A stretch of DNA of 64,000 nt from contig NC_135770.1 in assembly GCF_052425735.1 (NCBI RefSeq), positions 31,434,001-31,498,000 on the forward strand. The letters are read 5' to 3'. The notes beneath the pieces were generated by a model. That model was given only the letters and a program-made list of their open reading frames with translations, had not been told where the DNA came from and ran no database searches. Numbering within the stretch: position 1 is the stretch's first letter; the number at the start of each line of letters is the position of its first letter. Below are positions 26,001 through 29,000 of this stretch, one piece after another. This stretch comes from Oculina patagonica (taxonomy: Eukaryota). The position numbers and the translations under genes are program-made.

Positions 26001-29000
26001 GGAAACAAAAGCGTTGATGATAGAGACTGATTAAATAAACTGGTTAAAACAAAAATTAAAAATTGATCTTTTTTTTTGTTAGTCAATCAATAAAACTACT
26101 AAACATGTATTCTCTTTATAAGAAATGTAACAATTAACAATATTCTTGTAAATTGTTTAATTTACAGGACTTAAAGCAAATCCAAACATGGATTTTGTTC
26201 CTCGTACTGTCATGATTGGAGGAAAGGTACTTGTCATTATCCACAACAGATTCATAATAATCATTGATCGATTTAATAGATGTTGTAGCATATTTTCATG
26301 CTTTTATATTTACACCAATGTCCAGCATTTCTGTTTTCACTACTAGACATTTGTGTCTTTGTGTGTTGTCTGCCTGAGAATCATGATAGCAAATTGGCCA
26401 GATTTTTGCCAGATAGCCATAATAGTTGAAACAGAGTAGAACGTAGGGGCGAGGAAAAGTACGAGCAATGAGCAAAATGCCCGCTCGTATTATAATGTTA
26501 AACCATAGAATAAAGGATTTATTATTCTACTAATTTTTCCACTTTGTTTGGGCCAGTATTCCGTAATTTTGTCTGCCCGTATTTTTGCCCTGTTCTACTT
26601 TTTTTAAAAATATTCACTTCATGTTAGTTGTCTTTCTGAATAACTTATGTCAACTTTACCCTTGAGTACTAAGAGTAAATCTCCTTTTCAAAATTGCAAG
26701 AAAACCTTGAGGTGTACAACTGAGGGTTAAACAACACAACAACACTGCAAAGAACTTTCTGGATTTGTTTTGTTACAAAACATTATTTTGTGCATCCAGA
26801 AGAGCTTTAGTGCAGCTTCTGTAAAGTCGGTGCAAGAGTTAATATCATTCTGGCTTGGGAAAAAGTCATTTTATTATACACTACTTCAGTTAAAATGCCC
26901 TTTGAGTTATACTGAAATTTGATTTTTCTTAACAGGCAGCTCCTGGTTACTACATGGCCAAACTAATCATTAAACTCTTCAACAGCATTGCCAGAGGTGG
27001 GCAAGTTATCTATGTTTCATTTGTATCTAAGTTTTACCTTTAAGCAAAACTTTAAACTGCATTCTACAGTCTGGGCCCAGTTGCCAAGGGTAGATAACGC
27101 TATCCACTGGATAAATTGCTATCCAGTGGATGTGTTGATAAAACAAACTAGGGTCACTGAAAGTGATTTATCTGCTGGATAGCGTTATCCATCCATTGAA
27201 CAACTGGGACCAGGAGAACTGTAACATGAAATACCTGTTGAACAGCCTATTACATGTACATTACAAATAGCTAACTACAGTGTTCATGTACAGTCAACTC
27301 CCACCTTGCGGACATCTCACTATTATGGACACCCTGTTATTACAGACAGGAGTTGAAGTCCTGGTGAACAAGAATTACTGAAAGTAACTCCGGCTACTGC
27401 CGACTTTCTTTATTGTGGACACTAAATTGTGGTCCCGAAGGTGTCCATTATAGTGAGAGTTGACTGTACAGGGCATTTGTAAATGATGTTCCACAAGTTG
27501 CATTGTATAATTTGCACTCTGTTGAGTGCAAATACAATGTATGGTATGTATGGTTATTGACATTAATATGTTCCATTTTGCATTCAACTTACTTTTGCAG
27601 TGGTGAACAATGATCCAATCATTGGGGATAAACTTAAACTTGTGTTTCTTGAAAACTACAGAGTCTCACTTGCTGAAAAGGGTATCCTTTCCTGCCAATA
27701 TACGTACATACTCACAGCAATGTAACAAAACAAACTCTGGTAAATTATCGTTTTATCTTTGTAATAAAACAAGTTGTTTCCATCATTAAATAGCCTGCGA
27801 ACGCAGAGAAACGACAGCCGGAAAAATTTGAAAATTTTTCAGTCCTTCCATCGATCAATCAATCAATCACTCAATCAATCAATCAAAGTGTATTTAGAGA
27901 GGGTGACACTTAGGAGTTATGCAACTAATAAACTTGTGACGCTCTTAAAAATCGCTATTAAAAACATTTCACTTGTCAATTGCCATTGTATTTACTACTA
28001 AGAATCTGAAGCACATTCTTTTTATTAAACCAGAGGATGTTTAATTTATAAATTCACTTCCTTGACTGTTGTTCAGTTATCCCAGCTTCTGACCTGTCTG
28101 AGCAGGTATGTAACAACTCAGTAATTATTACATGATACCAGTGAGAGTGTAATGAGACTAGCTCTGTCATCCCAGTTCTCTCCTGTGACACCTATTTTAA
28201 AATTAGGGCTTTTGGCGAGGAGCGGGCATGTATTTGGAAGGAAGGTGTTGGGCCAGTATGAGCTTGCTAATATACAGGTAGTGACTGGTCCTGAGGGAAA
28301 CAGTTAATTTTGTTTCCCGAGAATCTCAATGTTTCCCTTGGCTTTGGCTCGGGAAACACTGAGATTTGAGGGAAACCAAATTAACTGGTTTCCTGAGGGA
28401 CCAGTCATTAAGTGATTTGTTATAAAATTATAGCACAATGAAGACTGAAAAAAAAGGCGGCCAGTGGTCAACATTCTCGGGTAACAGTGCACTGGTCCCA
28501 TCTGATGTCATAGATTTTGCAATGTTACCTGCTCAGAAATTTTGGGCGGAAAACAGTTTTTTTGTTAGATGTCATGTGACCTCAAAGTAGCCAATACGAG
28601 TGCACGCTGTTGGGAGAAAAATTCCTGACCAGCTATAAAACAACATGAGTCATGTTCGTTCATCTTGGGAACCTTATTGGAGTGAAACACTGACATCGTG
28701 GAACCGTCTTGATGTCATTCCAAGCAACCTGGCCTGAATACATGTACCTGTAACCTAGAATTTACCAATGTACAGTTTAATTGGTAAACAAGCAGACAGT
28801 GACAGAACAATGCTTGCAATTCAGACTGGCATTAGCCAAAGTCCTCTTGATAGTAATTTGTTTTTGTCCTTGTTATTTCAGATATCTTTGGCAGGAACTG
28901 AAGCCTCTGGAACAGGGAACATGAAATTCATGGTGATTAATGACATCAATTTTATTTTAATGTATTATTTATTAACTGTTTTCAAATGTGTTTGCTGTGC

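Follow-up and report, generated by a model that had tools for sequence, protein, structure and literature searches.

The closest described relatives of the intron analysed here are the GT-AG U12-type introns of animals. Those catalogued in MIDB (Olthof et al. 2019, PMC6717393) have the same 5' core as our intron, as in the listed examples CAGGTATCCTTT and GTAGTATCCTTT, and GCTTCCTTGACT is listed as a branch-site core. Minor introns show a bias against phase 0, and their density in Acropora is reported to be above that of most vertebrates (PMC10639083). The motifs of minor introns are far richer in information than those of major introns, and type conversion is usually assumed to run from minor to major (Larue & Roy 2023, PMC10639083). 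Occasional major-to-minor conversion has also been proposed, with about 15–20% of human minor introns inferred to be of major origin (Olthof et al. 2024, PMC11347168). The known cases of minor-to-major conversion are orthologous introns of which one lineage has the minor and another the major type (PMC10639083, PMC11347168). Glycogen phosphorylase genes do not figure among the hosts catalogued there for human and mouse. PYGL, PYGM and PYGB are absent from the human and mouse minor-intron lists of MIDB, in which the controls MAPK8, SCN8A, E2F1 and PHB2 are present; a look-up of the three human genes, as the earlier note on this DNA had proposed, therefore places none of them among the minor-intron genes. 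Our literature search found no paper meaningfully joining minor or U12 introns and glycogen phosphorylase.

The window, which is the whole 64-kb stretch of Oculina patagonica DNA that was analysed, contains a glycogen phosphorylase gene whose intron 15 is very probably of the U12 type. The gene model was built by tblastn against three homologues and by inspection of splice sites. Its joined coding sequence of 2541 nt translates into 846 residues without internal stops. A genome search with Pfam PF00343 gave exon-sized matches at this locus only, so the gene appears to be single-copy. A search with Rfam found no RNA genes within the phosphorylase locus. The features around intron 15 are as follows.

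14001–31529, + strand: glycogen phosphorylase gene from ATG to TAA, 21 coding exons and 20 introns, 846 aa (homology-based model)
27601–27681, + strand: exon 15, 81 nt, ending with the first base of Val661; its junctions are present in spliced contigs of a relative
27682–28076, + strand: intron 15, 395 nt, phase 1 in Val661, GT-AG, very probably U12-type
27682–27690, + strand: 5' splice site GTATCCTTT of U12 type; the exon side reads ...AGG, without AG at −2/−1
27839–27886, + strand: (TCAA/CAAT)n microsatellite within intron 15, flagged as repeat, with no apparent role
28058–28066, + strand: branch site TTCCTTGAC of U12 type; position 28065 is the branch A, at 11 nt from the final base of intron 15
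28075–28076, + strand: 3' splice site AG of intron 15, from the sequence and the relative's spliced contigs
28077–28105, + strand: exon 16, a microexon of 29 nt encoding (V)IPASDLSEQ, of the same length in the six lineages compared
28106–28881, + strand: intron 16, U2-type, reading GTATGT, a pyrimidine tract and CAG
28882–28932, + strand: exon 17, 51 nt, with the codon of the PLP-binding Lys685 at 28924–28926

Exon 15 ends in GCT GAA AAG G, followed directly by the donor of intron 15. The donor GTATCCTTT agrees with the consensus RTATCCTTT at 9 of 9 positions. The branch site TTCCTTGAC agrees equally fully with TTCCTTRAY, in which the A is expected about 10–15 nt from the 3' splice site. The terminal dinucleotides GT and AG fit the GT-AG or AT-AC requirement of U12-type introns. 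Among the 20 introns, intron 15 is the only one in which both motifs score 9/9 and are correctly spaced, while the donors of the remaining 19 reach 3–6/9 against the U12 consensus. This bears out the claim of the earlier note that the intron is of the U12 type and the only such one in the gene; its placement just before a 29-nt microexon and the PLP-lysine exon also holds, at 28077–28105 and 28882–28932. The donor is a poor fit to U1, having GG at −2/−1 and TCC at +4 to +6. U12-type introns lack a polypyrimidine tract of their own between branch site and 3' splice site; here the 10 nt after the branch-site motif (tgttgttcag) leave no room for one, yet they are T-rich, and the pyrimidine fraction before the AG is 0.73. 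In its short distance from branch site to AG, its non-zero phase and its position as a lone U12 intron among many U2 introns, intron 15 resembles the MIDB introns, and its branch-site core ACTTCCTTGACT is counted as the same as the listed one; the host gene is what differs. Phase 1 agrees with the bias of minor introns against phase 0 and was counted in favour of the U12 class.

Two further motif occurrences in the window were recorded. The sole other GTATCCTTT lies at 22983–22991 on the − strand, inside intron 8. Near the 3' end of intron 2, TTACTTGAC at 17238–17246 matches the U12 branch site at 8 of 9 positions, 17 nt from the AG. Intron 2 has a plain U2 donor (GTGAGA), and a branch-like motif alone is therefore not diagnostic. 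Weak U2-type donors are found in intron 3 (GTTACA, 17461–17466), intron 13 (GTACTT, 26227–26232) and intron 20 (GTCAGA, 31275–31280); introns 13 and 20 are backed by spliced contigs and intron 3 by homology only. Intron 16 contains a MITE-like palindrome at 28279–28410, with 48-nt arms that are 83% complementary and a 13-nt spacer. High contig depth in the runs of the relative suggests that the palindrome belongs to a dispersed repeat family.

Usage of the splice junctions was inspected in spliced contigs from two small runs (X1 and X2) of a relative about 96% identical in coding sequence, not of this individual. A single contig of run X2 spans four of them, namely 26226/26936, 26996/27601, 27681/28077 and 28105/28882. 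The microexon, with one silent change, is also part of a 1558-nt contig of run X1 that extends on across exons 17–21. From intron 13 to intron 20, each of the eight junctions in these contigs is as the gene model has it. The junction 27681/28077, which the earlier note had singled out for confirmation in RNA, is thus joined exactly in the relative. The interior of intron 15 is covered by none of its contigs, so that no retained form appears among them, and contigs are uninformative on splicing efficiency or retention.

We then looked for the same intron in other lineages. The query was a 52-residue frame that runs from exon 15 into intron 15 and translates as ...SLAEK-GIL, since G|GTATCCTT reads Gly-Ile-Leu. 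Searched in a protein collection, it retrieved eight independent gene-caller read-through fragments that end ...SLAEKGIL, and other fragments that end GK or GE, as U2-type donors would read, or continue into IPA with no intron. Five further lineages (L011–L015) formed the comparison set; L015–L018 come from four Tara Pacific coral metagenomes. The donor GTATCCTTT is identical in 5/5 of these lineages. Their branch sites read TTCCTTGAC, CTCCTTAAC, TTCCTTAAC or TTTCTTGAC and lie 10–12 nt before the AG, and in each the U12 intron is followed by a 29-nt exon and then by a U2-type donor. The orthologous introns range from 354 to 1134 nt. Their interiors are no more identical among lineages than shuffled controls, and third codon positions in the flanking exons are only 43–81% identical. 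With interiors randomised and third positions diverged while the motifs are kept, the splice motifs are held by selection across deep divergence. Per-exon protein identity of these lineages to the window is about 83–100%, which marks them all as anthozoan-like.

A degenerate DNA scan of metagenomes for a 10-residue peptide returned bacterial phosphorylases nearly exclusively, besides one coral-like U12 donor and two U2-like donors. The coral-like one belongs to a further close relative (L120) and reads GTATCCTTG. The peptide ...(I/L/M)(I/F/M)PA.D.SEQIST is common almost exactly to many bacterial glycogen phosphorylases on metagenome contigs (loci L027–L146), and degenerate DNA scans for the exon are consequently swamped by bacteria.

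The genome also encodes the RNAs of the minor spliceosome. Above Rfam gathering scores, it has three copies of U12, two of U6atac, two of U11 and one of U4atac. The U12 snRNA carries GAGUAAGGAAAAU (GUAAGGAA), complementary to the branch site of intron 15. At its 5' end, on the reverse strand, U11 reads AUAAAAGGGCC (AAAAGGGCC), which is complementary to the CCUUU of the donor. The two U6atac genes (L008/L009 pair) are as follows.

G000:C6:24275867–24275994, + strand: U6atac gene reading GUAUGA-GCCGA-GAGAAGG
G000:C6:24214399–24214526, − strand: U6atac gene reading GUAUGA-GCCGA-GAGAAGG

In both copies GCCGA replaces the AAGGA box of the Rfam consensus and of other animals, and the assembly contains no canonical AAGGA-box copy. 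The complementarity of the intron 15 donor to an AAGGA box of U6atac is accordingly absent here. The same 'CC variant' of U6atac is known in cnidarians, Trichoplax, a sponge, Acanthamoeba, Physarum and others, where it occurs alongside canonical U12 introns; those who described it in 2008 remarked that the pairing proposed for the 5' splice site is difficult to square with it (Davila Lopez et al. 2008, PMC2396436). As GCCGA is a known variant that coexists with canonical U12 introns, it is no argument against U12 membership of intron 15. The clash between CC-variant U6atac and canonical GTATCCTTT donors, raised in 2008 (PMC2396436), is visible in this genome too.

On the proposed mechanism, U11 and then U6atac would recognise GTATCCTTT, and U12 would pair with TTCCTTGAC, bulging the A 11 nt from the AG, whereupon the minor spliceosome would remove the intron. 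Purifying selection would keep the intron and the following 29-nt microexon in stony-coral-like anthozoans. The likeliest effect of the intron would be one generic for U12 introns, namely constitutive and possibly slower splicing.

The same Val codon was inspected outside the anthozoan-like group. In bird PYGM (Catharus), it harbours a phase-1 U2-type intron with donor GTGGGT and a long pyrimidine tract, and in eel PYGB a phase-1 U2-type intron with donor GTAAAA. The earlier note was therefore right to place a phase-1 intron in this codon (AEK-V-IPA) of vertebrate PYG genes. This vertebrate intron 16 (PYGM, PYGB) shares position and phase with intron 15 of the coral, splitting the Val codon as G|TN after ...NYRVSLAEK. 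It differs in type, being U2-type (GTGGGT or GTAAAA, with a long pyrimidine tract) where the coral intron is U12-type. The surrounding structure also differs. The next exon of bird PYGM, compared at L010 22796–23005 against window positions 28077–28932, is a single one of 208 nt (residues 657–726) equivalent to coral exons 16, 17 and 18 (29+51+128), so that coral introns 16 and 17 are absent. We take this exon to match human PYGM exon 17. Bird PYGM also lacks coral intron 14 and has two extra introns, inside coral exons 3 and 4. Among other sequences, metazoan contig L026 (998–1195) has a U2-type GTAAAA donor at the Val codon and exons 13–15 fused, and metazoan contig L025 (5314–6225) is without an intron there, with exons 12+13 and 14–17 fused and introns 12 and 14–16 absent. 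The read-throughs P0278, P0281 and L100 are U2-type at the same site. A search with the full-length protein retrieved vertebrates only, cluster look-ups gave names for just a fish, a fluke and a shark, and a 74-aa intron-less query retrieved only fragments uninterrupted through the intron site, which are uninformative on intron type.

Could the ends of intron 15 resemble U12 motifs by chance in an ordinary U2-type GT-AG intron? Taken singly, the motifs do not stand out in the window. For GTATCCTTT there are two occurrences where 0.69 would be expected, and for TTCCTTRAC three where 1.81 would be; neither is significantly enriched, and the stretch before the AG is fairly pyrimidine-rich. What goes beyond chance is that the motifs fall on an exon boundary which protein homology fixes independently, that they are correctly spaced and that other lineages conserve them. 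Base composition gives an estimated chance per intron of about 1e-4 for such a donor and 2e-4 for a branch site at the right place, or roughly 2e-8 for the two together. Two perfect and correctly spaced motifs on a homology-defined boundary, both kept in five or more lineages despite randomised intron interiors, together with a donor that suits U1 poorly, make a chance resemblance extremely improbable. An intron in transition, 'minor-like' or hybrid and spliceable by either spliceosome, would account for the weakened branch site of L015, TTTCTTGAC, and for the G at +9 in L120, and such intermediates have been described as nodes of type conversion (PMC11347168). However, the AG at −2/−1 that defines minor-like introns is missing here and in all relatives, which have GG, and donor positions +1 to +8 are invariant; we consider a hybrid intron very improbable. 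Membership in the 'minor-like' class proper (Olthof et al. 2024, PMC11347168) was ruled out, as −2/−1 is GG rather than AG and the motifs are not degenerate. Judged from these sequence features, intron 15 is very probably a genuine GT-AG U12-type intron of glycogen phosphorylase, removed by the minor spliceosome.

How the coral and vertebrate introns came to differ in type is a separate matter. Minor-to-major intron type conversion was reportedly treated by Burge et al. in 1998. Among the sequences sampled, the U12 state at the Val codon is found in one anthozoan-like group only. The likeliest history, we infer, is that of an old U12 intron which in the vertebrate line was probably converted from the minor to the major type. 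This reading, which the earlier note had also put forward, is favoured because conversion is generally taken to run in that direction (PMC10639083). The reverse, in which an ancestral U2-type intron became U12-type in the anthozoan lineage, would fit the state of every sampled sequence that is not anthozoan-like, as the bird, the eel, L026, P0278, P0281 and L100 are all U2-type and the rest lack the intron; a major origin inferred for about 15–20% of human minor introns (PMC11347168) lends it some precedent. Against it stand the usual direction of conversion, together with the greater information content of minor motifs (PMC10639083), and the small size of the outgroup sample, and we hold a derived U12 state to be possible but rather unlikely. 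An old intron converted on the vertebrate line fits the known conversion cases, which likewise pair a minor intron of one lineage with a major orthologue of another; it differs from them in that no intermediate 'minor-like' state appears among the sampled lineages.

Retention of intron 15 is predicted to add 14 codons before a stop at 27723–27725. The earlier note had held that retention would remove the PLP-binding half of the enzyme. The PLP lysine would indeed be lost, but the part removed would be the last 186 of 846 residues (22%) and not half. Retention would probably trigger nonsense-mediated decay (NMD), and a failure to splice intron 15 would give a truncated, PLP-less product, probably an NMD target. 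A regulated throttle can be imagined on this basis, in which stress- or diel-controlled retention tunes the output of the sole glycogen phosphorylase gene; this would be the splicing-level switch on glycogen mobilisation put forward in the earlier note. In mammalian cells, U12 introns can splice slowly and the level of U6atac can be stress-controlled, which speaks for such a throttle, as do the single copy of the gene, the early stop upstream of the PLP lysine and the joint conservation of U12 intron and microexon. The conservation is, however, accounted for just as well by U12 introns being hard to lose or to convert, and a pan-eukaryotic survey argues that minor introns have evolved in large part through neutral processes (PMC10639083). 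We regard a throttle of this kind as unlikely. Still more doubtful is a conserved anthozoan regulatory module, formed by the U12 intron and the 29-nt microexon, in which minor-spliceosome activity would set the yield of functional glycogen phosphorylase mRNA. If it existed, the yield could be tuned to heat stress, say, or to the alternation of day and night in the carbon cycle of symbiotic corals, and skipping or retention would lead to a PLP-less, NMD-targeted transcript.

U12 introns are a rare but well-known class, and the phosphorylase intron is a solid but ordinary addition to it. Within the minor-intron complement of corals, it is one more instance with no difference in kind, and by itself it reveals no new regulation of glycogen use. 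It does have practical bearing, as this is a region where an important metabolic gene may be broken up by prediction programs that take no account of U12 signals and microexons. The canonical GTATCCTTT donor is strongly constrained in animals without the AAGGA box of U6atac, which bears on the question raised in 2008. The intron also provides a well-supported position that is minor in anthozoans and major in vertebrates, which would be useful for studies of intron type conversion.
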